A stretch of 64,000 nt of DNA, taken from positions 1,488,001 to 1,552,000 of the forward strand of contig JAPDFW010000070.1 in assembly GCA_028826165.1 (NCBI GenBank), in the 5' to 3' direction. The DNA is from Anaeramoeba ignava BMAN (taxonomy: Eukaryota > Protista > Anaeramoebae). Made by a program: the position numbers and the translations under genes. Within the stretch, counting starts at the first letter, position 1. Each line of letters starts with the position of its first letter. The notes beneath the pieces were generated by a model. That model was not told where the DNA came from and did not search any database. It worked only from the letters and a program-made list of their open reading frames with translations. This document shows positions 21,069 through 55,000 of the stretch, one piece after another.

Positions 21069-21099
21069 AATTTTTTGAAAAGAAGAAAAATGAAAAATG

Positions 21100-21690
21100 A
21101 AAAAATGAAAATTATTTTAATTTAATATTTAATTTATAAATTAATTTTAATTTTAATTTTAATTTTAATTTCATTATTAAAATAATAATTTATTGTTTTA
21201 GAATTAAATATTTTCTTATTTAAATATTTAACATATAAATATAAAAAATGAAAATTATTTTAATTTAATATTTAATTTATAAATTAATTTTAATTTTAAT
21301 TTTAATTTTAATTTCATTATTAAAATAATAATTTATTGTTTTAGAATTAAATATTTTATTATTTAAATATTTAACATATAAATATAAAAAATAAGAATAG
21401 ATTTAATTTAATATTTAATTTATAAATTAATTTAAAAATATAATTTATTATTTAATTTTATTATTAAAATAATAATTTAATGTTTTAGATTTAAATATTT
21501 TATTATTTAAATATTTAACATATAAATATAAAAATGAAAATAAGTTTAATTTAATATTTAATTTATAAATTAATTTAAAAATATAATTTAATATTTAATT
21601 TTATTATTAAAATAATAATTTATTGTTTTAGATTTAAATATTTTATTATTTAAATATTTAACATATAAATATAAAAATGAAAATAAGTTT
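21100..21690. repeat. ~143-bp AT-rich tandem repeat, 4 units, upstream of BTB-ARM copy A
   Basis: Marker GTTTTAG recurs at 21195, 21338, 21482 and 21625. Confidence 0.9.
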
Positions 21691-22214
21691 ATATTATTTT
21701 AAATAAAGAAAAGTTGATAAAATATATAAAATGGAATTGATTCTTAATTTAATTATTAATTATTCTTTATTTCATTTTTTATTTTTTTTCATTTTTTCTT
21801 TTCAAAAAAAAAGCAAAAATTTAAGTAAAAATTATTTTTAATTATAAAATAAAAAATCAAAATAAAATTTAATAATAAATAATAATAAAAATATAAAATA
21901 AAAATTAAATTGAAACGAAATAATTGTTAATTACTTATTAATTTATTATTATTTCAATAAATAAATAAAAAAAGGAAAAATAAATTTCAAATTTTATTTA
22001 AAAGAAATTATCAATAAAAAAATTAGAATTTAAATTTAATTCAAAATAAAAATGAAAAATAAAATAATTTATTATTAATTTATTATTATTTTATAAATAT
22101 TTATTTAATTTATTCAAATAAAAAAACTAATTTTCCTTTTTTTTAATTAAAAATAAAAATAAAAATAAAAATAAAAATAAAAATAAAAATAAAAATAAAA
22201 ATAAAATTAAGAAA
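21690..22214 (+). promoter_or_regulatory. Upstream/promoter region shared with copy B (34770-35298)
   Basis: Near-identical to the sequence upstream of copy B (ATGGAATTGATTCTTAA, TTGAAACGAAATAATTGTTAATTACTT) and ends in (TAAAAA)n before the ATG. Regulatory function is inferred from position only. Confidence 0.45.
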
Positions 22215-25200
22215 ATGAGTGATTCTTCAAAAGAAATTGATTCAAAAAAGAAATCAAAACAAAAAAAGAAGAAAGATCAAAATCAAAATCAAAATCAAAT
22301 GGATCTTCAAGAACAATTTATCCAAATGCAAAATCAAATCCAACTTTTAATGCAAAATCAAAAATCAAAATCAAAAAAAAAATCAAAAAAAAAAATCAAA
22401 CAAAAAAATCAAAATCAAAATCAAAATCAAAATCAAAATCAAAATCAAAATCAAAATCAAAATCAAAATCAAAATCAAAATCAAAATCAAAATCAAAATC
22501 AAAATCAAATCCAAAAAATTACATTTAAAGAAATTTATTCAAAAGAAAAATCTGAAAAAATCCAAATATCAAAATTATATCAACTTCCTCCTCAAGAAAT
22601 TAATAAATTTTTAATTTGTGAACTTCTTTCAAATTACAAAGCAATGTTTCAAAATGAAGAAAATTGTGATTTTATAATTTATGTTGGAAAAAATAATCAA
22701 AAAATTCCTTGCCATAAATCAATTCTTAATTCAAGATCAATATTTTTTTTTGAAAATCATCATGAAAAATCAGAAACTGAAGAATTATATCTTCCACAAT
22801 TTGAATATGAAATTGTTAAACCAATCATTTCATTTCTTTATGATTCAGAATTTAAATTTGATTTAAACAAATTTGAAAAATATTTTCAATTTGCAAAAGA
22901 TTTTAAATTAATAAGTTTAATAATTAAAATTGAAAAAGAAGTTTCAGAACAAATTAATGAAACTAATGTTATTCCAATTTATTTCAAAAGTATTTTCATT
23001 GAATCGAATTATATTTCCAATATTTGTGAAAAGTTTATTAAAGAAAATATGAAGAAGATTATTGAAGAAAATCAAACTGGAAAAATTAATAATAAAGAAT
23101 TAAAAGAAATTATTCAAATTATTCAATCAACACCAAAAGAAAGTAAAATTGATTTAATTTGGAAATTATCTCAAGATTGGAAAAAGAAATTTGAAAAAAG
23201 CAATAAAAATTTAATTGATAAAGAACAATACATTGATCAAATTCAAATTAAAGAACTCAATAATGAAATTCAAGATTTTTATATTATTATTGATAATATT
23301 AAAAATAATGGATTTATTTACTTGAATTCAAGAACTCAAAACAACCAAATTTTACCTCCAACTCAACAATTCCAATTAATAAATGAAAAAAATAAAGAAT
23401 TAAATCAAGAAAATCAACAACTTAAACAAAAACTCAAAAACCAAGACAAAATAATTCAACAAAAAGATAACAAAATTCAAAAACAAAAGAATAAGATCAC
23501 AAAAATGAAAAAAGAATTAGAAATTTTTCAAACAGAAAGAAAAGTACATCAAGATTTAGAAAATTATAAAAATCAAATTTCAAATTTAAATGAAAGTAAA
23601 TTATTTTAAATTTTAAATTTTAAATTTATTAATTAATTATTTTCAAATCAAATTTAAAATTAAAACAAAAACAAAAAAGAAACAATTGAAGAAACAATAA
23701 AATATATGAAACAATATCAAAACAATGAAATTATTCAACAAAAAGGATGTTTTATTTTACAAAAATTTGGAAAAGAAAATGAAAGTAAATATTTATTTTA
23801 AAACTTAATTTACTTTTTGAAACAATTTTTGGATAATAATAATATTAAAAATAATAAAAATAAAAATATTTGGAAATTCAAAGATAATCAAATAGAAATC
23901 AAAAAATTTAATGGAATTGAATCTCTTATTAATGCAATGAATAATTTCCCAAATAATGAAGAAATTCAAATTAAATCAAGTGAAACTTTACAAATATTTT
24001 CAGGAGGATTAAAAAGTAAATTAAATTTATTTTTTTAAATAAATCAAAAATTAAAAGAAAGAAAGAAAGAATTATTGAGAAATTTAAATCTTTTTCCTTT
24101 TATTTATTTTTCTTCTTTCCCAAAACAAAACAAAACAAAAAGAAGAAGAAAAAGAAAATCGAAAATTACAAGCAATAAAAATTTCTAAATTAAATGGAAT
24201 TAAAACAATTATTAACACAATTAATAATTATCCAAATAATCAAATTATTCAAGAAAAATCTATTTCAATTTTAATTAATATTGCACTTAATTCAGGTAAA
24301 AGAAATTATAAGAAAAAACATTTATTCTCATAATATTTACATTTCAATTTCAATTTCAAAAATAAAAATATTAAAATAGAAAACAAAATTGAAATAAGAA
24401 ATTTAAAAGGAATTAAACCTATTATTAAATCAATGAATAATTTCCCAAATAATCAAGATATTCAATATAAAGGATGTTGGGCTTTATTGAATATTGCTGT
24501 TGATGATGGTAAATATAAATATAAATATAAATATAAATATAAATATAAATATAAATATAAATATAAATATAAATATTTTAATCAATTATTTATTAATAAT
24601 TATTAATCAAAAATATTTAATCAATTTATTTCCAAAAAATTAATTTCAATTTATTTTCCAAAATAAAAATATAAAAATAGAAAACAAAATTGAAATTAGA
24701 AATTTAAAAGGAATTGAAACTATTATTAATGCAATGAATAATTTCCCAAATAATCAAAATATTCAATATAAAGGATGTAGGGCTTTAACGAGTATTGCTT
24801 TTGATAATAAAGGTAAATAAAAATAAAAATATAAATATAAATATAAATATAAATATTTTAATCAATTATTTATTATTAATTATTAATCAAAAATATTTAA
24901 TCAATTTATTTCCAAATAATTAATTTCAATTTCAATTTATTTTCCTAAATAAAAAATATTAAAATAGAAAACCGAATTGAAATTAGAAATTTAAATGGAA
25001 TTGAACCTATTATTAAATCAATGAATAATTTCCCAAATAATCAAAATATTCAAGAAAATGGATGTTGGGCTTTATTGAATATTGCTGTTGATGATGGTAA
25101 ATATATATAAAAATATAAATATAAATATAAATATAAATATTTTAATCAATTATTTATTATTAATTATTAATCAAAAATATTTAATCAATTTATTTCCAAA

Positions 25201-25915
25201 AATTAATTAATTTCAATTTCAAAAAAATATAAAAATAGAAAACAAAATTGAAATTAGAAATTTAAAAGGAATTGAACCTATTATTAATGCAATGAATAAT
25301 TTCCCAAATAATCAAGATATTCAATATTATGGATGTAGGGCTTTATTGGTTATTTCTGGTGATAAAGGTAAATAAAAATATAAATATAAATATAAATATT
25401 TTAATCAATTATTAATTATTAATTATTAATCAAAAATATTTAATTAATTTATTTCCAAAAAATAATTAATTTCAATTTCAATTTATTTTCCAAAATAAAA
25501 ATATAAAAATAGAAAACAAAATTGAAATTAGAAATTTAAAAGGAATTAAACCTATTATTAATGCAATGAATAATTTCCCAAATAATCAAAATATTCAATA
25601 TAAAGGATGTAGAGCTTTAGAGAATATTGCTGCTGATAAAGGTAAATATAAATAAAAATATAAATATAAATATAAATATAAATATTTTAATCAATTATTA
25701 ATTATTAATCAAAAATATTTAATCAATTTATTTCCAAAAAATTAATTTCAATTTCAATTTATTTTTCCAAAATAAATATCAAAATAGAAAACAAAATTGA
25801 AATTAGAAATTTAAAAGGAATTGAAACTATTATTAATGCAATGAATAATTTCCCAAATAATCAAAATATTCAAAAATATGGAAAAATAGCTTTAGAACAA
25901 TTACAAAAAAACTGA
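22215..25915 (+). CDS. BTB/BACK - coiled coil - armadillo repeat protein, copy A (10 exons; one ARM repeat per exon)
   Basis: Exons 22215-23595, 23680-23784, 23884-24015, 24143-24295, 24380-24508, 24681-24812, 24968-25096, 25239-25367, 25513-25641, 25788-25915 (TGA). All introns are GT-AG, phase 1. BTB: CDFIIYVG...[15 protein letters not shown]...IISFLY. ARM unit: [40 protein letters not shown]. Confidence 0.9.
24380..25915 (+). repeat. Tandem array of ARM exon+intron units (~270-300 bp period): 5 variable cassettes plus a terminal capping exon
   Basis: Exons of 129/132/129/129/129 nt share ATGAATAATTTCCCAAATAAT. Introns share GTAAAT(ATAAAT)n...TTTTAATCAATT...ATTAATCAAAAATATTTAAT...AAAATAG. 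Confidence 0.95.
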
Positions 25916-26029
25916 ATTATCTTTTCATCTTTTTTCTTTGATTTCTTTTCTTTTTCCAAACAAATTCAATAAAAAAACAAATTCAAATTCAAATTATTTT
26001 CCTTTTAATTTTATATTTAATTTCTTAAA

Positions 26030-26571
26030 ATAAATCAATAAATAAATCAATTAATAAATCAATTAATTAATCAATCAATAAATCAATAAATCAATAAATC
26101 AATTAATTAATAAATCAATTAATCAATTAATTAATAAATCAATTAATCAATTAATTAATTAATAAATCAATAAATCAATAAATCAATTAATTAATAAATC
26201 AATTAATCAATCAATCAATCATTTAATCAATCAATCAATCATTTAACCATTTAATCAATCAATAAATCAATCAATCAATCAATTAATTAATAAATCAATA
26301 AATCAATAAATAAATCAATCAATCAATCATTTAACCATTTAATCAATCAATAAATCAATCAATCAATCAATCAATCAATTAATTAATTAATTAATCAATA
26401 AATTAATAAAAAATAAATAATTCAATAATTCAAATAAACCAAATAAATAAATCAATAAATCACAAATAAATTAATAAATTACTAATAAAATAATAAATTA
26501 ATCAATCAATAAATCAATAAATTAATAAATCAATAATCAATTGTCAATCATTTCATTTGTCAATCAATCAC

Positions 26572-26609
<38 letters not shown>

Positions 26610-28299
26610 TACTAATAATCAATCAATAAATAAATAAATAAACCAAAAAATCAATAAAATCACCAATAAATCAAAATCAATCAATTAAAATCAATCAATC
26701 AATTAATTAATCATTGTTAATAATCAATAATAATCAATAAAATAATCAATAACAAATCAATCAATAATAATTAATCGATAATAAATAAATAAAAAATTCA
26801 CCAAATCAATCAAATTGTCAGTCAATTTCAATCATTTCAATCAATCAATCAAACAAATCATCAGCCAAATCAATAAAATAAATCACTAAAAATAAAATAA
26901 ATTAATAAAAATAAATCAATCACCAAACAAATCACCAATAACAAATCAATCAAATCAACCAAAAAATTTTCAAATCAATCAATCAATCAATCAATCAATT
27001 AATAATAATTAATAACTAATAAATAATAAATCAATAAATTAATCAACAACAAAATAATAAATTATTAATCAATCACAAATTGTAATAAATTAATTAATTA
27101 ATAAAATAAATCAATTAATAAATTACTAATAAATAACAAATCAATAATAAATAATAAATTTGTGCAAATTAATCACAATAATAAATCAATTAATTAATAA
27201 ATAATAAATAATTAATCAATTTCAAATAATAAAATCAAAATCACCAAATAAATCAATCAATAAATAAAATAAAATAAAAACAAATGTAATTAATCACCAC
27301 AAAATAAATAAATAAATAAATCAAAAATCAATCAATACCAAAATAAACAATAAATAAATCAATCAATCAATAAATTACCAATTCAACCAATAAATAACAA
27401 CCACCACCAATTACAAATAATCATTAATCACCACCAATTACCAATAATCAATCAACCACCAATCAATTGGTACCATCAATTCAATAAACCAATTAATTGG
27501 GTAAATCAACTAATAATTAATCAATATGGTAATTATCAATCAATACAATAATTACAATCCAAATTACCAATTAACAAATTAATAAATTGTCAGCCAAATC
27601 AATCAATCACCACAAAAATAAACCAACACCACCAAATTGGCCAACCATCAATAAATCAATAAATTAATAAATTAATAAATAATAAATTAAGCCAAATTAA
27701 TAAATAATAATAAATCAATCAATAATACTCAAAATAAATTCAACCAATAAATGAATAAATAAATCACCACCAATCCACCACCAATAATCAATCTAATAAA
27801 TAATTAATAAATAAATGCAAAACAATACTAATCAATCAATCAATCAATCACCAACCAACCATCAAAAATCAACCAAATACCAATCAATTACAAATTAATA
27901 ATAAATCAATCACTACTATTGGTAATTAACCAATTAATAATAAGCCAAATTGTCAATTGTCACCAACCAACAAATAAATCAAATCACCATTTCAATCATT
28001 CAAACCAATAAATAATAAAAAATAAATAAATAAATACAAATTAATTGGTAATAAAATCAATCAACAACTATTAATAAATTAATCAATCAATAAATGAATA
28101 AATAAATCAATCAATCACCAATCAATCAATCAATCAATAATTTAATAAATTAATAATAAATAAATCACCAATTAATAATCAATCAATCAATCAATCAATA
28201 ATCAATCAATCAATCAATCAATAATCAACCAATAATAATAAACTCAATCAATCACTATTACTATTAATTGGCCAATAATAAATAAATCAATCAATAAAT

Positions 28300-28330
<31 letters not shown>

Positions 28331-28505
28331 TAATCAATTAATCAATTAATCAATTAATTAATCAATTAATTAATCAATAAATTAATAAATCAATTAATCA
28401 ATCAATTAATAAATTAATTAATCAATTAATCAATCAATCAATTAATAAATTAATTAATCAATCAATTAATAAATAAATTAATAAATCAATAAATAAATCA
28501 ATTAA
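26030..28505. repeat. ~2.5 kb degenerate (AATC/AATA/AATT)n microsatellite tract
   Basis: Seen directly; almost no G on the + strand. Clean at the edges and scrambled in the middle. Confidence 0.85.
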
Positions 28506-28565
28506 AAAATAAAAATAATTTTTTCATTTTTCATTTTTTCATTTTTTCATTTTTTATTGAAATAA

Positions 28566-31500
28566 ATGGAACCATTTCAACTTAAAGGATATGATATTGA
28601 ATTTCCTTATCCAAAGCCTTATTCTTGTCAAGTTTTAATGATGGAAAATGTTCTAACTTGTTTAGAAAATCAAGAAAATGCACTTTTAGATTTTCCAACA
28701 GGAACAGGAAAATCGATAGCATTATTAGCAAGTAGTTTAACTTGGCAAAAAGAATTTAAAAAGAAAAGTTTCAGTTTAAATCAATCTGATTACAAAAATG
28801 TGAGTTTTGTTTAATTATTTAATTATTTATTTTTTTTAATTTTTTTTAACGTATTTTTTTAGACACAAGAAAAATCAAAAAATCGATTTAAGAATAAAAT
28901 TCCTAAAATTTATCTTTCAAGTCATACTCACACACAAATTGCTCAATTATGTCAAGAATTAAAAAGAACTAATTATAAACCTAAAATGGTTGTTTTAGGT
29001 TCTAGAGAGCAATATTGTATCAATGCAAAGTAGATATTATTTTAATTTTAATTTTAAATTTTAATTTCAATTTTATAAATGAATTTTAATATTAATTTTA
29101 ATTTTAATTTTAATTTTAATTTTAATTTCAATATTAATTCTAATATTAATTTTAATTTTATAAATGAATTTTGATATTAATTTTAATTTTAATTTTAATT
29201 TAAATTTTAATTTTTAATTTTAATTTTAATTTTAATTTTAATAATTTTAATTTTAATTTTAATTTTAATTTTAATTAAATTTTAATTTTAATTTAATTTT
29301 AAATGAATTTTGATTTTAATTTTAATTTTAATTTTAATTTTAAATTTAATTTTAATTTTATAAATGAATTTTGATATTAATTTTAATTTTAATTTCAATA
29401 TTAATTTTAATTTTAATTTTATAAATGAATTTTAAATTTAATTTTATAAATGAATTTTGATATTAATTTTAATTTTAATTTTAATTTTATAAATGAATTT
29501 TTTAATAATTAATTTTAATTTTAATTTTAATTTTAATTTTAATTTTAATTATAATTTTAATTCTAATATTAATTTTAATTTTATAAATGAATTTTAATTT
29601 CAATTTTAATTTTAATTTTAATTTTAATTTTAATTTTGATTCTAATTTCAATTTTAATTTTAATTTTAATTTTAATTTTAATTTTAATTTTAATTTTAAT
29701 TTTAATTTTAATTTTAATTTTAATTTTAATTTTAATTATAATTTTAATTTTAATTTTATAAATGAATTTTAGTGTGATGAAATCTGAAGGAAATAAAAAT
29801 GAAGAATGTGAAAAACTTATTAAATCAAAAAAATCAAGATGTCCTTATTACAGAGAAATGAACAAACGTTTTTCTAAAAATCAATATGATAGATATAATA
29901 TTAATAATGAAGTTTGTAACTCAAAAAATTAAAATTAAAAATTGAAATAAAAATTGAATTAAAAAAAAATCAAAAAGATAATTGATATTGAAGATTTAAA
30001 ACTTATTGGATCCAAAAATATGACTTGTCCATATTATCTTAGTCGAGATCTTGCAAAAGAAGCAGATTTAGTTTTAGCTCCTTATAATTATTTTGTTGAT
30101 CCAAGTAAAACAAATATAAAAGAAAAAAAATCAATTTTTTAATAATTATAATGATTTTCTTTTAAAAATAGAAATTCGGAATCAAATTTCACTTGATTTA
30201 ACAGATCAAATTGTTCTTATTGATGAAGGACAGTAAATTTATTTTTTATCCGATTTTTTTATTTAAAAGATTTTTTTTAATTTAAAATATTTTTTTAATT
30301 TAAAAATTTTAATTTAAAAATTCTAATTTAAAAAATTTTTTTAATTATTTAAGTAATATCGAAAATGCTTGCAGAGAAGCTCTTAGTCTTGATATAGAAT
30401 TAGAAGATATAGAAGAATTGACAAATTTTCTATTTGGAACAATGACAAAATTTCAACACGATTTTGTTCAAGAACTTTTTAAGCCAATTGCAGATTTTGT
30501 AATGTCTATTAATGAGCTCATTACACAACATAAAGATAAACTACAAACATCAAATGATTCCGGTAAATACACATACTGGACAGGGCAGTCACTCATTTCC
30601 CTTCTGAAAAATCACGGAATAACACAATTTGAATGCGATCATTTAGCTGAAGATTTTGAAAAGCTTCTTCAAAAAGAAAACACAAAATTTCTTTCCAACT
30701 CAAAAAACGGAGGACTTCCAGGAGAAACTGATGTTATTGACTTTGGAGACGAATTAGAAATGCCGAAAATGAAGACTTCTCACGCTGTTTTTATTGAAAC
30801 GCTGTTGATCATCTTGGATAAGGTTTTTGAATCTCCTGGAGATTTTTATTTGGTTCTTTCTTATCATAAAAAAGAAAATCCACTTTTTGATCGGAATCAA
30901 CATCGCAATTTCAATCAAAATCAATATCAACATCAACATCAAAATCAAAATCAAAACCAAAATCAATTTTCTGGATTTCGTAACCATTTTTCTGGTTTTA
31001 AACAATCTAACATAAATCATACTTACAAACAAAACCAAAAAAAAATTTTTTTTTCAATAATTTTAACGGAAATTCGGGACACCACGTGTCACATTTAAAA
31101 GAATCAGCAAAAAATCAACTTAATCAGCAAAACGCAAATAATCCGGTAATGGTATATGAGCTTTCGTTTTGGTGCATGCGACCTTCTGTGGCTTTCCGTA
31201 TGGCGTTTGAAAATACATGGAGCGTGGTGCTTACATCAGGAACACTTGCGCCGCTTGATCCATTTGAATCTGAGCTTGGATGCAAGTTCCCAATTCGGGT
31301 TGAGTCTGATCATGTGATTGACATTTCGGCGCAAGCGTGCATCGGCACAATAGCAAGGGGAATGGAAGGGAACATATTGAATACAACATTCAAACAGATT
31401 GGATCGACTGAGATCCAAGACTCAATTGGAGGAGTTATTTTGGAGATTTGCAAAATTGTGCCTGATGGAGTGCTAGTTTTTTTCTCATCTTATTCAATGG

Positions 31501-33278
31501 CGAAAAATCTCAAAAGAAGATGGGAAGCAACAAAGCTTCTTGACAAAATCCAAATGCACAAACAAGTTTTCATTGAATCTCAAGGAAGAAAAATTTTTAC
31601 GAAATCAATGAAAGATTATTATAAAGCAATCGAAAGGGGAAAAAATAACGGTCGACAAAATAGACCCCCAAAAAAAACAGGAGCGCTTTTTCTTGCGGTT
31701 GTAAGAGGAAAAGTGTCTGAAGGTCTTGATTTCAGCGACAGATATGCACGCGCTGTTATTGTTGTTGGAATTCCATTTCCAAGCACAAATTCTTTGAATA
31801 TCAAGCTGAAAAGACAGTTTAACAGCGATTTTGGACCGCCTCTTCTTCCTGGATCGCGATGGTACGAATTGCAGGCGTATCGCGCGCTCAATCAGGCTAT
31901 CGGAAGATGTCTTCGACACAGATACGACTATGGATCCGTGATTTTAATTGACGAGCGTTTTGAGCAAGATTATGTTAGATCAAATCTTCCCAAATGGGTT
32001 CGTGATCATGTCAAATCTTGGAGTGCAACTCGCAATTGTCTTTCTGATCTCTCCTCTTTTTTTGCAAGAATGAAAATATCTCCTCCTGTCAAACCTTCTG
32101 AATATAATTCATTTAAATCCATCGATTCCCAAAATTCCCAAAATTCTCAAAATTCTCAAAATTCTCGAAACAGAAAAAAAAGAAATTCTCCAAATCCTTT
32201 TTCAAATTCTTCCAATTCTTCCATTCAAACAAGTCTTAATGATTTTTTAATTTGGCGAGATCAAGAAATTAAAAAAACCAAAACAACAACCAGATCTAAT
32301 CAAAAATCACAAGAAATTGAAGAAAAAAGCGATTCCAATTTTGGACTTAAAAACATATATTTTTCTGAACAAAAAGGAGATTTTCAAAATGGGAAAGTTT
32401 TATATGATAATCTTACAAAATCCATGACAAAAACTTTAAAAACTGATTCAAAAACTTTAAAAACTGATTCAAAAACTTTAAAAACTGATACAAAAACTTT
32501 AAAAACTGATTCTAAAACTTTAAAAACTGATTCTAAAACTTTAAAAACTGATACAAAAAATGATTCAAAAAGTGGAATGAATTTACTCAATTCAAGTCCT
32601 TATTTTAATCAAGCACAACAACCAAAATCACAATCTTTTACAGGATTTTCTTTAGAAAATAAATTACCTGAATCTGTATTTCCAAACAATAAGGTTGTTT
32701 ATTCACAAATGGGAAAAGGAATAGATGAAAGGAATAGTCAAGATTATGGAAATGAAAATGAATTTTTTCAAAATCAATTTATTCAAAATCAAAATCAAAA
32801 TCAAAATCAAAATCAATTTATTCAAAATGAAAATATTCAAAATCAAAATCAAAATCAAAATCAAAATCAAAATCAAAATGAAAATATTCAAAATCAAAAT
32901 ATTCAAAATCAAAATGAAAATATCCAAAATCAAAATATTCAAAATATTCCAAATAATTTACAATTTCGAATTTCTTGTTCTTGTCAAGCTCTTTTTTATG
33001 TATATTCTGAAACTCTAAATTCACTTCCAAAAATTCCTAAATTTGCTTCAGTTTCTCTTGATGGGAAAGTTTATCGTGTTGCTTGTTTAGATTCTGAACA
33101 ACAATCTTATGTTGAAAATATTAAAATTACAAATGCAAATTTACAAATTGAAAATTGGAAAAATTCATGTTCACATGCTGTTTGTACAAAATGCAATGCT
33201 ATTGTAGGATTTCGAACTATGTTATTAAAAAAAGATACATTTTTAACACCAATTTTATGTCTTTTTGTTTCAGGATAG
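28566..33278 (+). CDS. BRIP1: FANCJ/BRIP1-like (Rad3/XPD family) Fe-S DNA helicase
   Basis: Exons 28566-28799, 28863-29029, 29773-29911, 29978-30104, 30172-30232 and 30354-33278 (one frameshift near 31040-31090). Q motif [10 protein letters not shown], Walker A PTGTGKS, four Fe-S cysteines (YCIN, EECEK, RCPYY, TCPYY) and DEGH box across an intron. Later motifs [28 protein letters not shown] and [25 protein letters not shown] are FANCJ-type. Confidence 0.9.
29030..29772 (+). repeat. Intron expanded by (AATTTT)n repeats
   Basis: GT...AG boundaries restore INAN|VMKSEG; the interior is hexamer repeat. Confidence 0.85.
32429..32560 (+). repeat. Coding 21-bp tandem repeat (KTLKTD[S/T]) x6 in the helicase C-terminal tail
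   Basis: AAAACTTTAAAAACTGAT(T/A)C(A/T) repeated six times. Confidence 0.9.
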
Positions 33279-33364
33279 AATTTATATTTTAGAATACATT
33301 TCCGAAGATTTTGAATTTATATTTTTATTATTAAATAATTTTAATTTTAATTTTAATTTTAATT

Positions 33365-34770
33365 TTAATTTTAATTTATAATTTAATATTTAATTTATAA
33401 ATTAATTTAAAAATATAATTTAATATTTAATTTTATTATTAAAATAATAATTTATTGTTTTAGATTTAAATATTTTCTTATTTAAATATTTAACATAAAA
33501 ATATAAAAAATGAAAATAAATTTAATTTAATATTTAATTTATAAATTAATTTAAAAATATAATTTAATATTTAATTCCATTATTAACTTAATAATTTATT
33601 GTTTTAGATTTAAATATTTTATTAATTAAATATTTAACATAAAAATATAAAAATAAGAATAGATTTAATTTAATATTTAATTTATAAATTAATTTAAAAA
33701 TATAATTTAATATTTAATTCTATTATTAACTTAATAATTTATTGTTTTAGATTTAAATATTTTATTATTTTAAATATTTAACATATAAATATAAAAATGA
33801 AAATAGATTTAATTTAATATTTAATTTATAAATTAATTTAAAAATATAATTTAATATTTAATTTTATTATTAAAATAATAATTTATTGTTTTAGATTTAA
33901 ATATTTTATTATTTAAATATTTAACATATAAATATAAAAATGGAATAGATTTAATTTAATATTTAATTTATAAATTAATTTAAAAATATAATTTAATATT
34001 TAATTTTATTATTAAAATAATAATTTAATGTTTTAGATTTAAATATTTTATTATTTAAATATTTAACATAAATATAAAAATGGAATAGATTTAATTTAAT
34101 ATTTAATTTAAATTAATTTAAAAATATAATTTAATATTTAATTTTATTATGATTTAAATATTTTATTATTTAAATATTTAATATAAATATAAAAATAAGA
34201 ATAGATTTAATTTTATATTTAATTTATAAATTAATTTAAAAATATAATTTAATATTTAATTTTATTATTAAAATAATAATTTATTGTTTTAGATTTAAGT
34301 ATTTTATTATTTAAATATTTAACATATAAATATAAAAATGAAAATAGATTTAATTTAATATTTAATTTATAAATTAATTTAAAAATATAATTTAATATTT
34401 AATTTTATTATTAAAATATTAATTTATTGTTTTAGATTTAAATATTTTATTATTTAAATATTTAACATAAAAATATAAAAATGGGAATAGATTTAATTTA
34501 ATATTTAATTTATAAATTAATTTTAAATTTAATTTTAATTTTATGTTTAAAATAATAATTTAATGTTTTAGATTTAAATATTTTATTATTTAAATATTTA
34601 ACATAAAAATATAAAAATGGAATAGATTTAATTTAATATTTAATTTATAAATTAATTTAAAAATATAATTTAATATTTAATTTTATTATTAAAATATAAT
34701 TTATTGTTTTAGATTTAAATATTTTATTATTTAAATATTTAACATAAAAATATAAAAATGAGAATAAGTT
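33365..34770. repeat. ~143-bp AT-rich tandem repeat, ~10 units, upstream of BTB-ARM copy B
   Basis: GTTTTAG at 33457, 33601, 33744, 33888, 34030, (truncated unit ~34150), 34286, 34429, 34565 and 34706. Same unit as 21100-21690. Confidence 0.9.
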
Positions 34771-35298
34771 TATATTATTTTAAATAAAGAAAAATTGATA
34801 AAATATATAAAATGGAATTGATTCTTAAATTTAATTATTTAATATTCTTTATTTCATTTTTATTTTTTTTCATTTTTTTCTTTTCAAAAAAAGCAAAATT
34901 TAAGTAAAATTATTTTTAATTATAAAATAAAAATCAAAATAAAATTTAATAATAAATAATAATAAAAATATAAAATAAAAATTAAATTGAAACGAAATAA
35001 TTGTTAATTACTTATTAATTTATTATTATTTCAAATAAATAAACAAAAAGGAAAAATAAATTCTAAATTTTATTTAAACAAAAATTATCAATAAAAATTA
35101 GAATTTAAATTTAATTCAAAATAAAAATGAAAAATAAAATAATTTATTATTAATTTATTATTATTTTATAAATATTTATTTAATTTATTCAAATAAAAAA
35201 CTAATTTTCCTTTTTAATTAAAAATAAAATAAAAAATAAAAATAAAAATAAAAATAAAAATAAAAATAAAAATAAAAATAAAAATAAAAATAAAGAAA

Positions 35299-38200
35299 AT
35301 GAGTGATTCTTCAAAAGAAATTGATTCAAAAAAGAAATCAAAACAAAAAAAGAAGAAAGATCAAAATCAAAATCAAAATCAAATGGATCTTCAAGAACAA
35401 TTTATCCAAATGCAAAATCAAATCCAACTTTTAATGCAAAATCAAAAATCAAAATCAAAAATCAAAAATCAAACAAAAAAATCAAAATCAAATTCAAAAT
35501 CAAAATCAAAATCAAAATCAAAATCAAAATCAAAATCAAAATCAAAATCAAAATCAAATCCAAAATCAAAATCAAAATCAAAATCAAAACCAAAAAATTA
35601 CATTTAAAGAAATTTATTCAAAAGAAAAATCTGAAAAAATCCAAATATCAAAATTATATCAATTTCCTCCTCAAGAAATTAATAAATTTTTAATTTGTGA
35701 ACTTCTTTCAAATTACAAAAGCAATGTTTCAAAAATGAAGAAAATTGTGATTTTATAATTTATGTTGGAAAAATAATCAAAAATTCCTTGTCATAAATCA
35801 ATTCTTAATTCAAGATCAATATTTTTTTGAAAATCATCATGAAAAATCAGAAACTGAAGAATTATATCTTCCACAATTTGAATATGAAATTGTTAAACCA
35901 ATCATTTCATTTCTTTTATGATTCAGAATTTAAATTTGATTTAAACAAATTTGAAAAATATTTTCAACTTGCAAAAGATTTTAAATTAACAAGTTTAATA
36001 ATTAAAATTGAAAAAGAAGTTTCAGAACAAATTAATGAAACTAATGTTATTCCAATTTATTTCAAAAGTATTTCCATTGAATCGAATTATCTTTCCAATA
36101 TTTGTGAAAAGTTTATTAAAGAAAATATGAAGAAGATTATTGAAGAAATCAAACTGGAAAAATTAATAATAAAGAATTAAAAGAAATTATTCAAATTATT
36201 CAATCAACACCAAAAGAAAGTAAAATTGATTTAATTTGGAAATTATCTCAAGATTGGAAAAAGAAATTTGAAAAAAGCAATAAAAATTTAATTGATAAAG
36301 AACAATACATTGATCAAATTCAAATTAAAGAAATCAATAATGAAATTCAAGATTTTTATATTATTTTTGATAATATTAAAAATGATGGATTTATTTACTT
36401 GAATTCAAGAACTCAAAATAACCAAATTTTACCTCCAACTCAACAATTCCAATTAATAAATGAAAAAAATAAAGAATTAAATCAAGAAAATCAACAACTT
36501 AAACAAAAACTCAAAAACCAAGACAAAATAATTCAACAAAAAGATAACAAAATTCAAAAACAAAAGAATAAGATCACAAAAATGAAAAAAGAATTAGAAA
36601 TTTTTCAAACAGAAAGAAAAGCACATCAAGATTTAGAAAATTATAAAAATCAAATTTCAAATTTAAATGAAAGTAAATTATTTTAAATTTTAAATTTATT
36701 AATTAATTATTTTCAAATCAAATTTAAAATTTAAAAACAAAAAAGAAACAATTGAAGAAACAATAAAATATATGAAACAATATCAAAACAATGAAATTAT
36801 TCAACAAAAAGGATGTTTTATTTTACAAAAATTTGGAAAAGAAAATGAAAGTAAAATATTTATTTTAAAACTTAATTTACTTTTTGAAACAATTTTTGGA
36901 TAATAATAATATTAAAAATAATAAAAATAAAAATATTTGGAAATTCAAAGATAATCAAATAGAAATCAAAAAATTTAATGGAATTGAATCTCTTATTAAT
37001 GCAATGAATAATTTCCCAAATAATGAAGAAATTCAAATTAAATCAAGTGAAACTTTACAAATATTTTCAGGAGGATTAAAAAGTAAATTAAATTTCTTTT
37101 TTTAAATAAATCAAAAATTAAAAGAAAGAAAGAAAGAAAGAATTATTGAGAAATTTAAATCTTTTTCCTTTTATTTTCCTTTTATTTATTTTTCTTCTTT
37201 CCCAAAACAAAACAAAAAGGTGAAGAAAAAGAAAATCGAGAATTACAAGCAATTAAAATTTCTAAATTAAATGGAATTAAAACAATTATTAACACAATTA
37301 ATAATTATCCAAATAATCAAATTATTCAAGAAAAATCTATTTCAATTTTAATTAATATTGCACTTAATTCAGGTAAAAGAAATTATAAGAGAAAATATTT
37401 ATTCCTATAATATTTACATTTCTAATTTATTTTCCAAAATAAAAATATTAAAATAGAAAACAAAATTGAAATAAGAAATTTAAAAGGAATTGAACCTATT
37501 ATTAATGCAATGAATAATTTCCCAAATAATCAAGATATTCAATATAAAGGATGTTGGGCTTTATGGAATATTGCTGGTAATAATGATGGTAAATATAAAT
37601 ATAAATATAAATATAAATATTTTAATCAATTATTAATTATTTATTATTAATCAAAAATATTTAATCAATTTATTTTCAAAAAATTAATTAATTAATTAAT
37701 TTAAATTTTAATTTATTTTCCAAAATAAAAAATATCAAAATAGAAAACAAAATTGAAATTAAAAATTTAAAAGGAATCGAATCTATTATCAAATCAATGA
37801 ATAATTTCCCAAATAATCAAAATATTCAATATAAAGGAACAAAATTGAATATTTTGAAAATAAAAATAAAAATAAAAAATATAAAATATAAATATAAATA
37901 TAAATATAAATATAAATATAAATCAAAATAAATATAAATATAAATATAAATATAAATATAAATATAAATATAAATATAAATATAAATATAAATATAAATA
38001 TAAATATAAATATAAATATAAATATAAATATAAATATTTTAAACAATTATCTATTATTAATTATTAATCAAAAAATATTTAATCAATTTATTTCCAAAAA
38101 ATTAATTAATTTCAATTTCAATTTATTTTCCAAAATAAAAAAAATATCAAAATAGAAAACAGAATTGAAATTAGAAATTTAAAAGGAATTGAACCTATTA

Positions 38201-40644
38201 TTAAAGCAATGAATAATTTCCCAAATAATCAAGATATTCAATATAATGGATGTTGGGCTTTAGGGAGTATTGCTGCTGATAATGGTAAATATAAATATAA
38301 ATATAAATATAATTATAAATATAAATATTAAATAAAAATATAAATAATAAATAATCAAAAATATAAATCAAAATATAAATAAAAATAATAAATATAAATA
38401 TAAAAAAAAATAAAAATAAAAAATAAATTGAAATAGAAATATAAAGGAATAAATTATTATAAATGAATAAATATAAATAATCAAAATATAAATATTATAA
38501 ATATGGGGCTTTATTAAATAAAAATGATAAAAATATAAATATAAATATAAATATAAATATAAATATTTTAATCAATTATTTATTAATAATTATTAATCAA
38601 AAATATTTAATCAATTTATTTCCAAAAAATTAATTTCAATTTCAATTTCAATTTCAAAAAAATATTAAAATAGAAAACAAAATTGAAATTAGAAATTTAA
38701 AAGGAATTGAACCTATTATTAATGCAATGAATAATTTCCCAAATAATCAAAATATTCAAAAATATGGATGTGGAGCTTTAGGGAATATTTCTGGTAATGA
38801 TGGTAAATAAAAATAAATATAAATATAGATATTAAATGAAATAAATATAAATATAAATATAAATATAAATATAAATATAAATATAAATATAAATATAAAT
38901 ATAAATATAAATATAAATATAAATATAAATATCAATATAAATATAAATATAAATATAAATATAAATATAAATATAAATATAAATATAAATATTTTAATCA
39001 ATTATTTATTAATAATCAAAAATATTTAATCAATTTATTTCCAAAAAATTAATTTCAATTTCAATTTATTTTCCTAAATAAAAAATATTAAAATAGAAAA
39101 CAGAATTGAAATTAGAAATTTAAAAGGAATTGAACCTATTATTAAATCAATGAATAATTTCCCAAATAATCAAGATATTCAAGAATATGGATGTGGAGCT
39201 TTAAGGAATATTGCTGCTGGTAATAAATAAAAATTAAAAATAAAAATAAAAATATAAATATAAATATAAATATAAATATAAATATAAATATAAATATAAA
39301 TATAAATATAAATATAAATAAAAATATTTTAATCAATTATTTATTAATAATCAAAAATATTTAATCAATTTATTTCCAAAAAATTAATTTCAATTTCAAT
39401 TTCAATTTCAAAAAAATATCAAAATAGAAAACCAAATTGAAATTAGAAATTTAAAAGGAATTGAACCTATTATTAATGCAATGAATAATTTCCCAAATAA
39501 TCAAAATATTCAATATGTTGGATGTGGAGCTTTAATAAATATTGCTGCTGATAAAGGTAAATAAAAATATAAATATAAATATAAATATTTTAATCAATTA
39601 ATTATTATTAATTATTAATCAAAAATATTTAATCAATTTACTTCCAAAAAATTAATTTCAATTTCAATTTATTTTCCAAAATAAAAAATATTAAAATAGA
39701 AAACCAAATTGAAATAAGAAATTTAAAAGGAATTGAACCTATTATTAAAGCAATGAATAATTTCCCAAATAATCAAAATATTCAATATAAAGGATGTGGA
39801 GCTTTATTGAATATTTCTGCTGATAAAGGTAAATATAAATATAAATATAAATATAAATATTTTAAACAATTATCTATTATTAATTATTAATAAAAAATAT
39901 TTAATCAAATTTATTTCAAAAAAATTAATTTCAATTTCAATTTATTTTCCAAAATAAAAATATAAAAATAGAAAACGAAATTGAAATTAGAAATTTAAAA
40001 GGAATTGAACCTATTATTAAATCAATGAATAATTTCCCAAATAATCAAGATATTCAAAAATATGGATGTTGGGCTTTATTGGTTATTGCTTTTGATAATG
40101 ATGGTAAATAAAATATAAATATAAATATAAAAATAAATATTTTAATCAATTATTTATTATTAATTATTAATCAAAAATATTTAATCAATTTATTTCCAAA
40201 AAATTAATTTCAATTTCAATTCATTTTTCCAAAATAAAAAATATCAAAATAGAAAACCAAATTGAAATAAGAAATTTAAAAGGAATTGAACCTATTATTA
40301 ATGCAATGAATAATTTCCCAAATAATAAAGATATTCAATATAAAGGATGTAGAGCTTTAAGGAATATTGCTGCTGATAAAGGTAAATATAAATAAAAATA
40401 TAAATATAAATATTTTAATCAATTATTAATTATTAATCAAAAATATTTAATCAATTTATTTCCAAAAAATTAATTTCAATTTCAATTTATTTTCCAAAAT
40501 AAAAAATATAAAAATAGAAAACAAAATTGAAATAAGAAATTTAAAAGGAATTGAATCTATTATTAATGCAATGAATAATTTCCCAAATAATCAAAATATT
40601 CAGAAAATGGAAAAATAGCTTTAGAAAAATTACAAAACAACTGA
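35299..40644 (+). CDS. BTB/BACK - coiled coil - armadillo repeat protein, copy B (frameshifted as assembled: sequencing errors or pseudogene)
   Basis: Constant exons 35299-36672 (several A/T-run indels), 36746-36850, 36951-37082 and 37220-37372. ARM cassettes 37457-37588, 37744-~37870 (3' end garbled), 38156-38284, ~38415-38530 (ghost), 38674-38802, 39097-39219, 39428-39556, 39700-39828, 39972-40103 and 40253-40381. Terminal exon 40518-40644 carries a 1-nt deletion. Confidence 0.8.
37457..40644 (+). repeat. Tandem array of ARM exon+intron units: 8 intact + 2 corrupted variable cassettes plus a terminal exon
   Basis: Same exon and intron unit as 24380-25915, with variable (ATAAAT)n length after each donor. 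Confidence 0.93.
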
Positions 40645-40791
40645 ATTCTCTTCAGTTCATCTTTTTTCTTTGATTTCTTTTCTTTTTCCAAAACAAATTC
40701 AATAAAAAAACAAGAAAATCAAATTTAAATTTTTTTTCATTTTTTTCATTTGTTTTAATAAATTAAAACATTAATAAATTTTTTTCCACGA

Positions 40792-42003
40792 ATGCACAAA
40801 ATTCTCTTTTTAATAATTTTACTAGTTGAAGAAATCTTAACAACAACAAAAAGAATGGAAGTTTTTTCAGAAAATAAAGAAATTCACAACAACTTTGGAG
40901 TTGGAGTTTCTATCTCAGGAAATTTTGCAGTAATTGGGTCACCATGGGAGGAAGATGAGACAGAGAACGAAGCAGGAGAAAAAGGGGTTGGGGGACGAGC
41001 TTATGTATTTCTGCGACAGGACTCACACTGGAAGCAAATTGGAACACTTTTCAGTAATTCAACCGAGAAAGGTGACGACTTCGGCGCAAGTGTATCAGTC
41101 TCTGGAAACCGCACAGTGGTTGGTGCGCCCATACATAACCTCACAGGAGCTGTGTTTGTGTTCTGCTTTGGCGCGGATGATCAGAGCCCAGTGCCTTGGA
41201 TCAAGCAAACATACAAACTAGTTCCCGAAGACGCTGAAGCAGGTGATCAATTTGGCATTGACGTATCTCTATCAGGAAATACTCTCCTTGTTGGCTCGCT
41301 CTTTTCCGCATCTACAGAATCTCAAATGCAGGTTGGTTCGGCATACGTTTTTTCTTTTGATGGATCAACTTGGACTCAGTCGGCAAAATTGCTGCCTTCT
41401 TATTCAACCCTCTTTGACGGATTCGGCACCGCGGTTTCAATATCAAACTCGGTCGCGATTGTCGGTGCGCCCCAGTGTGATGAGAACGGGGTTGATAGCG
41501 GAGCCGCGTTTATCTTCGAGTTGACAGATTCCGTTTGGACTCAATCCGCTATGCTTCTCCCTAATGATAGCGAATCTGGAGACCACTTCGGAAACAGTGT
41601 TTCTGTCTCAGGCAATTTGGCACTCGTCGGTGCACCATGGAATGACGAGGTTGGCGCTGTTTATGTCTTCTCTAGAGTTGGTTCTTCTTGGGTTCAAACT
41701 CATAAAATTTTGCCGGGAGATTCCGTTGATTTTTTTGGAGTTACTGTTTCTATTAATGGTCGTTATGCTGTCATCGGTGCTTATGAAATTCGTCCTGATT
41801 CTTCCCTTTCTGGTTGCGCTTTTATTTTCCATTTCGTAAATGATAATTGGATTCTTGTTTCTAGAATGCCAAAAATTACTGATGATGATGATGATGATTT
41901 TTCTTATTCTCATTTACATGATATTTCTCTTTATGAAGGTGTTGATTTGGTTGATGGTCCTTTTGAATTTAAAAGATTGGATCAAAAGCTTGAAGATGAT
42001 TAA
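40792..42003 (+). CDS. FG-GAP repeat beta-propeller protein, probably secreted (6 clear repeats + degenerate 7th, acidic tail)
   Basis: Intronless 403 aa ORF with hydrophobic N-terminus MHKILFLIILLV. Repeats include GDDFGASVSVSGNRTVVGAP and GDHFGNSVSVSGNLALVGAPW. No membrane anchor. Confidence 0.88.
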   Translation: MHKILFLIILLVEEILTTTKRMEVFSENKEIHNNFGVGVSISGNFAVIGSPWEEDETENEAGEKGVGGRAYVFLRQDSHWKQIGTLFSNSTEKGDDFGASVSVSGNRTVVGAPIHNLTGAVFVFCFGADDQSPVPWIKQTYKLVPEDAEAGDQFGIDVSLSGNTLLVGSLFSASTESQMQVGSAYVFSFDGSTWTQSAKLLPSYSTLFDGFGTAVSISNSVAIVGAPQCDENGVDSGAAFIFELTDSVWTQSAMLLPNDSESGDHFGNSVSVSGNLALVGAPWNDEVGAVYVFSRVGSSWVQTHKILPGDSVDFFGVTVSINGRYAVIGAYEIRPDSSLSGCAFIFHFVNDNWILVSRMPKITDDDDDDFSYSHLHDISLYEGVDLVDGPFEFKRLDQKLEDD

Positions 42004-52082: not shown

Positions 52083-55000
52083 ATGGATTCATTTTATGAG
52101 ATCCAAATTCAACAAACAATCGATCTTTTTGATCAAATACGATTCCATCAAGAAGTTTGTGCTTTTATTTAATCTAAAAAAACAAATTAATTCTGACAAA
52201 TTTCATTTTTTTTTTCCAAACAAAAAAAAACACAAAAAATACAAAAAAAAAATTTTTTTCAAAAATGATTTTCTTATTAATTTTCTTAAATCTATTTTAA
52301 ATCAAATTTATATCAATTTTAAATCAATTTTTAAATCAAATTTTATATTAATTTTATATCAATTTTATATCAATTTTATATCAATTTTAAATCAATTTTA
52401 TATCAATTTTAAATCAATTTTAAATCAATTTTAAATCAATTTTAAATCAATTTTATATCAATTTTATATCAATTTTATATCAATTTTATATCAATTTTAT
52501 ATTAATTTTTATTAATTCAATTTTATATCAATTTTATATCAATTTTTATCAATTTTATATCAATTTTTATATCAATTTTAAAAATTTAAAATTTTAAATC
52601 AATTTTAAATCAATTTTAAATCAATTTTAAATCAATTTTATATCAATTTTAAATCAATTTTAAATCAATTTTAAATCAATTTTAAATCAATTTTAAATCA
52701 ATTTCAAATCAATTTTTAAATCAATTTTTATCAATTTTATATCAATTTTATATCAATTTTTATATCAATCAATATTAATTTATATCAATTTTTAAATTTT
52801 ATATCAATTTTATATCAATTTTAATCAAATCAATTTTAAATCAATTTTTATCAATTTTATATCAAATTTTAAATCAATTTTAATTTTATATTTTTTATAT
52901 CAATTTTATATCAATTTTATATCAATTTTAATCAATTTTATATCAATTTTAAATATTTAAATCAATTTTAAATCAATTTTAAATCAATTTTAAATCAATT
53001 TTAAATCAATTTTAAATCAATTTTAAATCAATTTTTAAATCAATTTTATTAAAATCAATTTTAAATCAATTTTAAATCAATTTTATATCAATTTTATATC
53101 AATTTTAAATCAATTTTATATCAATTTTAAATCAATTTTATATCAATTTTATATCAATTTTAAATCAATTTAAATCAATAATCAATTTTAAATCAATTTT
53201 AAATCAATTTTTAAATCAATTTTAAATCAATTTAAATCAATTTTATATTTTTTAAATCAATTTTTATATCAATTTTAAATCAATTTTATATCAATTTTAA
53301 ATCAATTTTTAAATCAATTTTATATCAATTTTAAATCAAATTTAAATCAATTTTAAATCAATTTTATATCAATCAATTTAATTTTATATCAAAATCAATT
53401 TTAAATCAATTTTATATCAATTTTATTAAATCAAATTTAAATCAATTTTAAATCAATTTTATATCAATTTTAAATCAATTTTATATCAATTTTAAATCAA
53501 TTTTAAATCAATTTTATATCAATTTTAAATCAATTTTAAATCAATTTTAAATCAATTTTAAATCAATTTTATATCAATTTTATATCAATTTTAAATCAAT
53601 TTTAAATTAATTCAATCTTTAAAATCTTAAAAAGAAACCCGAAAATCCAGAATTGTTAATCGATAACATCTTAGATAACATTTCTTACTCTTCAACAACA
53701 AATAACAATTACACAAAAAAAATGATCGAAGCAATTGAATACCTTGTAAAAAATCACATTGTTTCATGTGAACAAATTATCGAGCAAATTTTAACCAAAA
53801 TTGAAACAACAAAAACAACTTGTTGCCATCATAAAAAGAAAGATATCACAAATTTTTGCAAAATTATCAGCAAATTTGCTGCCCAAAGCTCAAAAAAAAG
53901 ACTTCTCGAATCACTGCAACGAGTCACAGTTCTTCTTCAACAGAAAAACACTTGCATTAACACAATTCGAGACTACTACAAACTCTTCAAAAGAATTATA
54001 AAGTTGCTCCCTCATTTTATTGTTATGAACCACTTGGAATCAATCGGAAATCAATTGCATCATATTGCAACACCAATAATCAAAAAATACTCAATCGCTC
54101 GCATACGATTTCTTGATATTATTGTGTCTAATAATCTCTGTTGTGAGTTTAAATTTCCGGGTAATCTAAACATCAACTTTTCTCACCAAGACGAACCGCA
54201 GTTTTATTCCCAAAAAAGAGTGAAAAAAAAACAGAAAATTTTCGAAGACTCTTCAAAATATTTTAACAGAATCAAAATATACCAAAAAGATTACCTGCGA
54301 AACTCAGAAGATAGTTTTTCACGAATTAACGCGCATTTGCTTCAAGACTCCACTTCTTTCTTGATTCGTCAACGGTTCAATAATTTCCACGAATCCTTTT
54401 TCCCTTACGCAAAAACCGAAAGGGCAAAAGCTTCAACAAAAACACTTTTCAGAATGATCAAGAATAAAGATGCGCCCAATGTTATTGTGCAGTTGATGGC
54501 GCTCAAATCTCATCTGCACAAACCTAAATCATTGAAAAATACGATACATAGTTACATTCCTGAAATACTTGCGCGGATATATTTTGATGCCGAGTCTCCT
54601 CATGTGGGAGGAGAACGCAGGGAAATTCCGCAAGAGCAGATAAAGCCAAAAGACCCAATGCCGCTAAAAGACAAGAACCAAATGCAGACGCACATGCAAA
54701 CAGATCCTCGCTCTCATACAAAGCTTATTGCTCAAGGTAGTTCAATCGCCAAACTAAAATCACATTTTTACCAAATTCGCGATTTGCTTTATTACTCGAT
54801 TGAAAGAGATGTAATTAATTTCCGAAAGTTTTTCCAAGATTTGGAAAGAATTAATTTACGCAGCAATTTCATCATCTGGTTGATTTCCCAATGCATAAAA
54901 ATCGTTTCTGTGAACCGAATTCTCCAGAAAGACTACCACAAAAATCACTCTTTAATGAACACTTGCATTAACTTTTACAATCCAGACAAATACCATGAAG

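Follow-up and report, generated by a model that had tools for sequence, protein, structure and literature searches.

The subject of this analysis is a pair of BTB-armadillo (ARM) repeat genes in a 64,000-nucleotide (nt) stretch of the genome of Anaeramoeba ignava BMAN (contig JAPDFW010000070.1, positions 1,488,001 to 1,552,000, hereafter the window). An intact gene (copy A, 22215-25915, forward strand) lies beside a tandem duplicate (copy B, 35299-40650, forward strand) that is broken and decaying while still holding the longer array of ARM-repeat exons. We consider it likely that the two are members of a large, A. ignava-specific BTB-ARM family that evolves by germline birth-and-death and diversifies probable substrate adaptors of Cullin-3-RING ligase (CRL3) type.

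Copy A consists of 10 exons, namely a BTB exon, three diverged ARM-like exons, five repeat-coding cassettes and a cap. Exon 1 has an open frame of 464 amino acids (aa) from 22215, in which an (AAATCA)n repeat occupies 22405-22509, and exits in phase 1 at a GTAAA donor past 23595; exons 2-10 are in phase 1 at both ends. The BTB domain is readily recognised at residues 142-245 of exon 1 (Pfam PF00651, E = 7.9e-14, 52.2 bits against a cut-off of 20.5). Each cassette starts directly after ATAG and ends before GTAAA, and its product is one repeat of 43-44 residues with an invariant NNFPNN loop. Taken singly, the cassettes match the Arm, ARM_LRRK2 and ARM_ARMC5 models of Pfam, with one cassette alone above the Arm cut-off and the others giving weak matches. 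In 13 of 13 intact cassettes of the window and in 24 cassettes at other loci, the borders have the form AG/GTA, the length is a multiple of 3 and both ends are in phase 1. A first-pass annotation of the window had described the arrays as one-repeat-per-exon, phase-1 cassettes, and this description holds, the exons being of 129 or 132 nt (one of 123 nt).

The first-pass annotation had also proposed a genome search with the cassette core, and had inferred a repertoire of receptors. In the window's own 42.8-Mb assembly the core occurs 826 times with at most 2 mismatches, and its reversed control 0 times; arrays of 15-40 cores are found on contigs C17, C22, C24, C35 and C46. Exon 1 has at least 95 BTB matches in the genome, including about 18 close paralogues (53-77% identity), several of them with stops, and the N-cap exon is matched 74 times, with E < 1e-3 in about 50 cases. 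The repertoire is thus one of hundreds of cassettes and dozens of genes. The exon 1 protein matches A. ignava proteins named 'BTB domain-containing' or 'protein aardvark', which have BTB and Arm domains, as do the annotated paralogues P0001 and P0002, and the NCBI gene models use the same cassette exon borders. Long open frames in some paralogues were considered as intronless arrays and rejected, since they are expansions of N/Q tracts and of 14-residue coiled-coil units. Such units are repeated in tandem in the coiled-coil linker between the BTB-BACK and ARM parts (paralogues L006, L018, L002 and L005), from none to more than 30, so that the spacing between the putative adaptor and the binding domain also differs between paralogues. 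Elsewhere in the genome there is a second tandem pair (G000 C80:109364-116765), in which exon 1 of the downstream copy is interrupted by stops and frameshifts and both partners have one cassette of the same sequence.

For the structural comparison the exons were searched one by one, and the paralogues P0001, P0002 and P0013 served as stand-ins for the full-length protein. The model of exon 1 residues 105-370, built with 25 family sequences, shows a BTB core followed by helices, with a predicted local distance difference test score (pLDDT) of 81.6. Its best fold matches (Foldseek) are SPOP (BTB probability 1.00), KBTBD2-CUL3-Rbx1, vaccinia A55-CUL3, gigaxonin and KLHL11, all of them Cullin-3 adaptors with a 3-box or BACK domain and several of them solved with CUL3. 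The earlier proposal of a BTB/BACK ligase module stands with regard to its fold, which is like the BTB-BACK or 3-box regions of these adaptors; cullin docking is plausible from that fold, and the genome has 18 Pfam Cullin matches, corresponding to roughly 8 genes. The ARM part was modelled on P0013, whose cassettes resemble those of the window (24-sequence alignment, pLDDT 97.2), and has a three-helix periodicity. In cassette numbering, helix 1 of the P0013 model ends at 7, helix 2 spans 10-20, the FPNN loop 21-24 and helix 3 25-38; the exon borders are therefore predicted to fall in the loop that connects helix 3 of one repeat with helix 1 of the next. In this model a single stripe down helix 3 contains the variable positions 29/30, 33, 36/37 and 40. 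The model is matched best by engineered consensus ARM proteins, some of them in complex with (KR)4 peptides (template modelling scores of 0.81-0.86), and beta-catenin, APC and LRRK2 are further fold matches. The structure prediction that had been called for as a check thus pairs a model resembling Cullin-3 adaptors with one resembling designed ARM proteins.

A different reading of these models, which we regard as unlikely, is that the proteins are real and diversifying and are not Cullin-3 adaptors, with the BTB and coiled coil serving for oligomerisation and the ARM part acting as a scaffold or as a membrane or cytoskeleton tether, as in Vac8 or the catenins. The nearest solved ARM structures by sequence are indeed Vac8, LRRK2 and ODAD2/ARMC4, the closest BTB by sequence is that of CP190, which is not a ligase adaptor, and the same cassette type is found in the A. 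ignava genome on kinase-SH3-ARM proteins (P0007), which means that the ARM module is not confined to ligases. However, the fold matches of the BTB region are all Cullin-3 adaptors, and the cassettes are also found on ARM-RCC1-BTB proteins of the same genome. In addition, ARMC5, a proven CUL3 substrate adaptor whose ARM domain binds the substrates, shows that an ARM and BTB combination can act in this way (PMC9462479, PMC11758996).

Copies A and B lie in a segmental duplication, 21095-26047 against 34185-40779, which was delimited by BLAST comparison of the two halves of the locus and has 93.7% identity in its first 3.8 kb and about 87% across the arrays. This bears out the claim that the copies have upstream DNA in common. 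In global alignment, exons 2 and 3 show 0 differences between A and B, as had been noticed by eye, and exon 4 shows 2; introns 1-3 have 4 substitutions in 322 nt and intron 4 has 9 in 84. The non-repetitive 1.1 kb of exon 1 contains exactly 11 isolated substitutions, the number that had been estimated for the BTB exon. The codon differences in exon 1 (15 nonsynonymous or stop, 2 synonymous) are near neutral, and at several of the differing sites the family consensus residue is retained in B and not in A.

The arrays tell a different history from one part to another. Copy A has 5 internal cassettes and a cap, and copy B has 8 intact cassettes, 1 truncated cassette, 1 decayed remnant and a cap, which agrees with the first count of 5 against about 10. 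No A cassette is equal to any B cassette, the least difference being 5 of 120 nt, and comparison within the arrays confirms that their introns are near-identical; both points had been claimed before. In a tree of the units (intron plus exon), A1 pairs with B1 and the two cap units pair with each other, each with support of 100/100, A4 groups with B8 (81/84), and the remaining units of both copies are intermixed in an unresolved star. Because A1 and B1 and the two caps pair and the other units are star-like, the ends of the arrays are orthologous and the middle has turned over or been homogenised. Unequal crossing-over between 272-nt units would give such orthologous ends and a mixed middle. 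It would also add or remove repeats without loss of frame, because the cassettes (129 or 132 nt, phase 1/1) are set in near-identical exon-plus-intron units of about 272 nt. The proposed gain and loss of cassettes is thus reflected in the different array sizes, in a dead cassette that lies within an intron of B and in the orthologous ends.

To describe selection on the predicted binding face, the positions 29, 30, 33, 36, 37 and 40 were fixed beforehand, by the register shared with designed ARM proteins. Positions 36, 37 and 40 are pocket-lining in importin-alpha and designed ARM repeat protein (dArmRP) structures. Residues 29, 30 and 33 are the pocket residues of designed ARM proteins (PMC11228518). 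Between A and B the cassette exons differ by 9.0% (433 differences, 40 pairs of 120 nt) and the upstream 100 nt of intron by 3.3% (86/2597, substitutions only), so that exons diverge above introns, which is the reverse of the usual pattern. Among the 13 intact cassettes, the ratio of nonsynonymous to synonymous differences per site (pN/pS) is 2.2 with an overall pS of 0.046, and the face codons have a pN of 0.39 against an intron divergence of 0.07. The minimum number of changes per site is 1.22 for the face, 0.12 for the rest of the exon and 0.24 for the intron (Fisher P = 3.6e-5). In a wider sample of 37 cassettes from 14 loci, with the detection motif excluded, the six preset positions hold 5 of the 6 top entropies (Mann-Whitney P = 1.8e-4). 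Nonsynonymous change at the predicted binding-face residues therefore appears to exceed the neutral rate, and the first-pass view that the arrays vary on their binding face is borne out in that the variation lies on the predicted face and is above both intron and synonymous divergence. Diversifying selection on the helix-3 groove is the best-supported reading of these data.

Two other sources of this pattern were tried and ruled out. Functional conservation of the introns is contradicted by intron sequences that are gene-specific across loci; older paralogues differ, and the A/B intron homogeneity is therefore attributable to recent duplication or conversion and not to function. The second, a G+C-biased mutation hot spot, is contradicted by the distribution of invariant sites that hold G or C, which number 18 of 26 in the scaffold and 1 of 12 in the face. 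Face codons have 31% G+C and introns 10%, and the face codons switch among those for W, R, G, L, E and T with no decay to A+T.

We think it improbable that the arrays have been shaped by neutral concerted evolution, that is, by gene conversion and unequal crossing-over, with the variable sites an unconstrained surface of no receptor role. The star-like internal cassettes and the introns homogenised within and between A and B are what such a process would leave, and a pseudogene copy B, together with the predominance of nonsynonymous differences in exon 1, points to relaxed constraint in the pair. Yet unconstrained sites should not outpace introns, and the face has about five times the changes per site of the adjacent introns. 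The overall pN/pS, the G+C content of face codons above that of introns and the recurrence of the same most variable positions across the 14 loci are likewise not expected of neutral decay.

The read data consisted of Logan contigs of 40-440 nt from four DNA runs of one sample and from run X5 (2022, another study, kind unrecorded), and contigs were compared over the stretch beside the (AAATCA)n repeat. Intron bins that the DNA runs cover have almost no depth in run X5, one 54-nt contig of X5 equals the variable part of cassette A2, and two other X5 contigs join the 3' end of a paralogue cassette straight to the predicted acceptor at 24379/24380. These observations suggest that X5 is an RNA run and that splicing of the cassettes takes place where it was predicted. 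No splice joint specific to copy A was found in the Logan contigs of this repeat-rich region. A transcriptome-derived open reading frame (ORF) from EukProt, P0043, has a BTB domain and spliced ARM repeats. It is identical to P0153, from another A. ignava locus, through the BTB, the coiled coil and the first ARM repeats, after which the arrays are different; the split point lies within the conserved helix-2 motif, and P0043 could be either a chimera made in transcript assembly or the product of a paralogue with the same constant region.

Phase symmetry would permit single cassettes to be skipped, and the family could in principle use its roughly 800 cassettes combinatorially, by exon skipping or by ectopic or somatic recombination, for ubiquitin-coupled recognition of symbiont, prey or viral proteins. 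We give this very little credence. No reliable cassette-skipping joint was found in the short Logan contigs, and the long-range joints listed in them were taken as repeat noise, their sides being only 20-23 nt. If such use did take place, it would be a protist analogue of a variable immune receptor repertoire, with many ARM grooves per locus, in a host whose symbionts are sulfate-reducing. A role in defence or in relation to symbionts is speculation.

The first-pass annotation had presented A and B as two paralogues and had overlooked that copy B is broken. Relative to A, exon 1 of B has 8 indels in global alignment, of which 6 shift the frame within the BTB part (near A positions 22637, 22650, 22694, 22744, 22836 and 23068); the frame is therefore split into three ORF pieces (35299-35607, 35827-36180 and 36399-36686) with stops between them. 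Further along, one cassette is truncated, another is decayed and the cap is broken. The claim that both arrays end in a distinct capping exon stands for the kinship of the caps, which group together in the tree, and fails for the integrity of B's cap, which is frameshifted with stops. Copy B is very probably a real pseudogene, because several of its lesions are not homopolymer errors and because exon 1 of A and the long ORFs nearby are undamaged. With one of the two proposed receptors a pseudogene, the locus is an example of birth and death and not of two working variants.

That A and B are one locus assembled twice, or that the defects of B are unpolished long-read errors, is hardly credible. 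In its favour, six of the indels in exon 1 of B lengthen or shorten A or T runs by 1-2 nt, as is typical of long-read errors, and contigs with 23256 A and 23307 G fit neither assembled copy. Against it, about 8 kb including a Rad3-type helicase gene separates the duplicated segments, and no cassette is the same in the two copies, which also have different numbers of cassettes and of satellite units. The truncated cassette, the decayed cassette and the cap change of B are not homopolymer lesions, and no break is seen in the adjacent ORFs (717 and 730 aa) or in exon 1 of A, which has the same homopolymers. The second tandem pair, on C80, also has a broken partner. The combination of 23256 A and 23307 G, which are B-type bases, occurs in read contigs of several runs without the other nearby variants of B, and it may represent an allele, a third copy or an assembly consensus error.

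The reading that we prefer, a germline birth-and-death family of probable CRL3-type adaptors, would work in the following way. The BTB domain, the BACK- or 3-box-like helices and the coiled coil of variable length would dimerise and dock a cullin, most likely Cullin-3, and the C-terminal part would form a regular ARM solenoid with one repeat per exon. The first and last units of the solenoid would stay orthologous and the middle units would turn over; scaffold residues and introns would remain homogeneous, with the face residues at the six preset positions driven apart by diversifying selection. Each gene would thereby present its own extended-peptide groove to the ligase, presumably for ubiquitination of the bound substrate.

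Several points weigh against this reading. The BTB domain is distant by sequence from every solved BTB (the best match, CP190, has E = 2e-6), and no clear phi-x-E cullin-contact motif of the BTB alpha3-beta4 region could be aligned by eye at the 12-20% identity to solved adaptors, where acidic residues are seen after a conserved F-F-x-E stretch of the BTB. The BTB-BACK region of copy A has several derived residues relative to the family consensus, so that even copy A might be under relaxed constraint, and transcription and splicing of copy A are at most suggested, by short contigs of a run of unrecorded kind (X5). The selection tests are simple counts, with non-independent pairs and a star-like count in place of a recombination-aware codon site model, and the wider sample, 37 cassettes at 14 loci, is small for the family and comes from one strain.

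Similar arrangements are known in other lineages. Zambounis and colleagues are said to have described, in 2012, exon-per-repeat families of leucine-rich repeat (LRR) and tetratricopeptide repeat (TPR) proteins in Ectocarpus, and to have proposed exon shuffling for these candidate receptors. The likeness is in the one repeat per exon and the symmetric phases, whereas the present family has ARM repeats and BTB-BACK domains and belongs to the Metamonada. Expanded MATH-BTB and F-box adaptors were reportedly treated by Thomas in Genome Research in 2006. These adaptors of grasses and nematodes are similar in combining a constant cullin-docking module with a multiplied, fast-evolving substrate domain, in forming large families confined to single lineages, and in having many pseudogenes (PMC4091423, PMC8120010). 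They have, however, a fixed MATH or FBA domain, and here there is an ARM solenoid of variable length whose symmetric one-repeat exons are gained and lost. ARMC5 of animals and ARIA/ABAP1 of plants also combine ARM and BTB, and single cassettes give weak ARM_ARMC5 matches, with Pfam scores far below the cut-off. In those proteins the domain order is reversed, as here the BTB is N-terminal and the ARM C-terminal with a coiled coil between, and they are single- or low-copy, without exon-per-repeat cassettes or a hypervariable face. The BTB-BACK or 3-box proteins of KLHL, KBTBD and SPOP type are the best fold matches of exon 1, several of them CUL3-bound, but identity is only 12-20% and their substrate domain is Kelch or MATH, where the present family has ARM with a long coiled coil inserted. 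With dArmRPs and importin-alpha the likeness is one of register, in that the natural hypervariable positions coincide with the engineered pockets at 29, 30 and 33, the residues which protein engineers randomise for peptide binders; those are engineered proteins or single conserved transport receptors, and here natural variation extends over hundreds of germline cassettes.

The main text of the genome paper contains neither BTB nor armadillo, and its supplements list only one unrelated BTB adapter family (PMC11550330). In a literature search on Anaeramoeba with armadillo, BTB or aardvark, no top-ranked paper mentions Anaeramoeba. This agrees with the first-pass statement that the architecture had not been described: as far as could be searched, the ARM exon-cassette implementation is new to the literature, and expanded, positively selected Cul3 adaptors are already known from MATH-BTB proteins. 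In plants and nematodes, expanded and fast-evolving ligase adaptors are suspected of acting in innate defence or conflict, and the domain that varies in them has a fixed fold; in the present family its place would be taken by a modular peptide-binding solenoid, the length of which can change exon by exon. If confirmed, the family would offer a natural collection of modular peptide binders and a new genetic way of diversifying receptors, and it may be relevant to how an anaerobic protist with symbionts keeps foreign or self proteins in check.

The features of both copies are collected in Table 1.

Table 1. Exons, cassettes and satellites of copies A and B (positions in the window).
Feature	Position	Strand	Basis
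143-nt satellite, 4.1 copies, 5' of copy A, within the duplicated segment	21100..21691	.	Tandem Repeats Finder
A exon 1: K/N/Q low-complexity N-terminus, BTB, BACK-like helices, coiled coil	22215..23595	+	464-aa ORF, Pfam, model, Foldseek
A exon 2: N-cap-like ARM exon, 105 nt, phase 1/1	23680..23784	+	weak ARM_LRRK2 match; same sequence in B
A exon 3: diverged ARM repeat; alternative in-frame acceptor 12 nt downstream	23884..24015	+	same sequence in B
A exon 4: diverged ARM repeat; in-frame acceptor ambiguity in AAG/AAAAG run, at most 12 nt upstream	24155..24295	+	exon anatomy, Pfam
Cassette A1, 129 nt, phase 1/1, B1 orthologue	24380..24508	+	tree support 100/100 with B1
Cassette A2, 132 nt	24681..24812	+	variable part matches a 54-nt contig of run X5 exactly
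Cassette A3, 129 nt, above the Pfam Arm cut-off alone	24968..25096	+	PF00514, 23.5 bits against 20.6
Cassette A4, 129 nt, nearest B8	25239..25367	+	tree support 81/84
Cassette A5, 129 nt, closest to B9 (7/120 nt different)	25513..25641	+	pairwise comparison
A C-cap exon, distinct hydrophilic helix 3, TGA stop	25788..25915	+	joins B cap at 100/100
143-nt satellite, 10 copies, 5' of copy B	33379..34766	.	Tandem Repeats Finder; BLAST matches
B exon 1, broken, 8 indels relative to A, in-frame stops	35299..36672	+	ORFs, alignment
B exons 2 (36746-36850), 3 (36951-37082) and 4 (37232-37372) with introns	36746..37372	+	exons 2-3 have A's sequence
Cassette B1, 132 nt, intact	37457..37588	+	anatomy, tree
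Cassette B2x, cut off after the start of helix 3 (3' half lost), without donor, then expanded (AAATAT)n	37744..37838	+	sequence
Cassette B3, intact	38156..38284	+	anatomy
Cassette remnant, A+T-decayed, in the 389-nt intron between B3 and B4 (approximate coordinates)	38430..38520	+	read from sequence
Cassette B4, intact	38674..38802	+	anatomy
Cassette B5, 123 nt given an upstream GGTAAT donor; usable only as a shorter exon	39097..39219	+	anatomy
Cassettes B6 (39428-39556), B7 (39700-39828), B8 (39972-40103) and B9 (40253-40381), 272-nt period	39428..40381	+	anatomy, tandem-repeat search
B cap exon, net 1-nt deletion, premature stops	40518..40650	+	anatomy

The window is very A+T-rich, with 10-35% G+C per 2 kb. 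The 143-nt satellite found 5' of both copies is itself A+T-rich and gives weaker matches on the reverse strand as well. On its 3' side copy A is adjoined by a 2.5-kb microsatellite of AATC/AAATAAATC type (26028-28518), which has a strong C-over-G skew and lies outside the duplication. Between the end of the duplicated segment of A (26047) and the start of that of B (34185) is the Rad3/XPD-type helicase gene (28566-33278), a multi-exon gene with a ResIII-like start, a Helicase_C_2 match (E = 2.9e-50), internal TLKTDSK repeats and N/Q repeats. Proteins with FG-GAP_2 repeats (E about 1e-70) are encoded on both sides of the pair, at 18915-21068 on the reverse strand and at 40792-42003 on the forward strand, the former with a signal-peptide-like start, Cys-rich repeats and a hydrophobic C-terminal tail. 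Further downstream, an open frame of 1874 aa extends over 53653-59277 on the forward strand.

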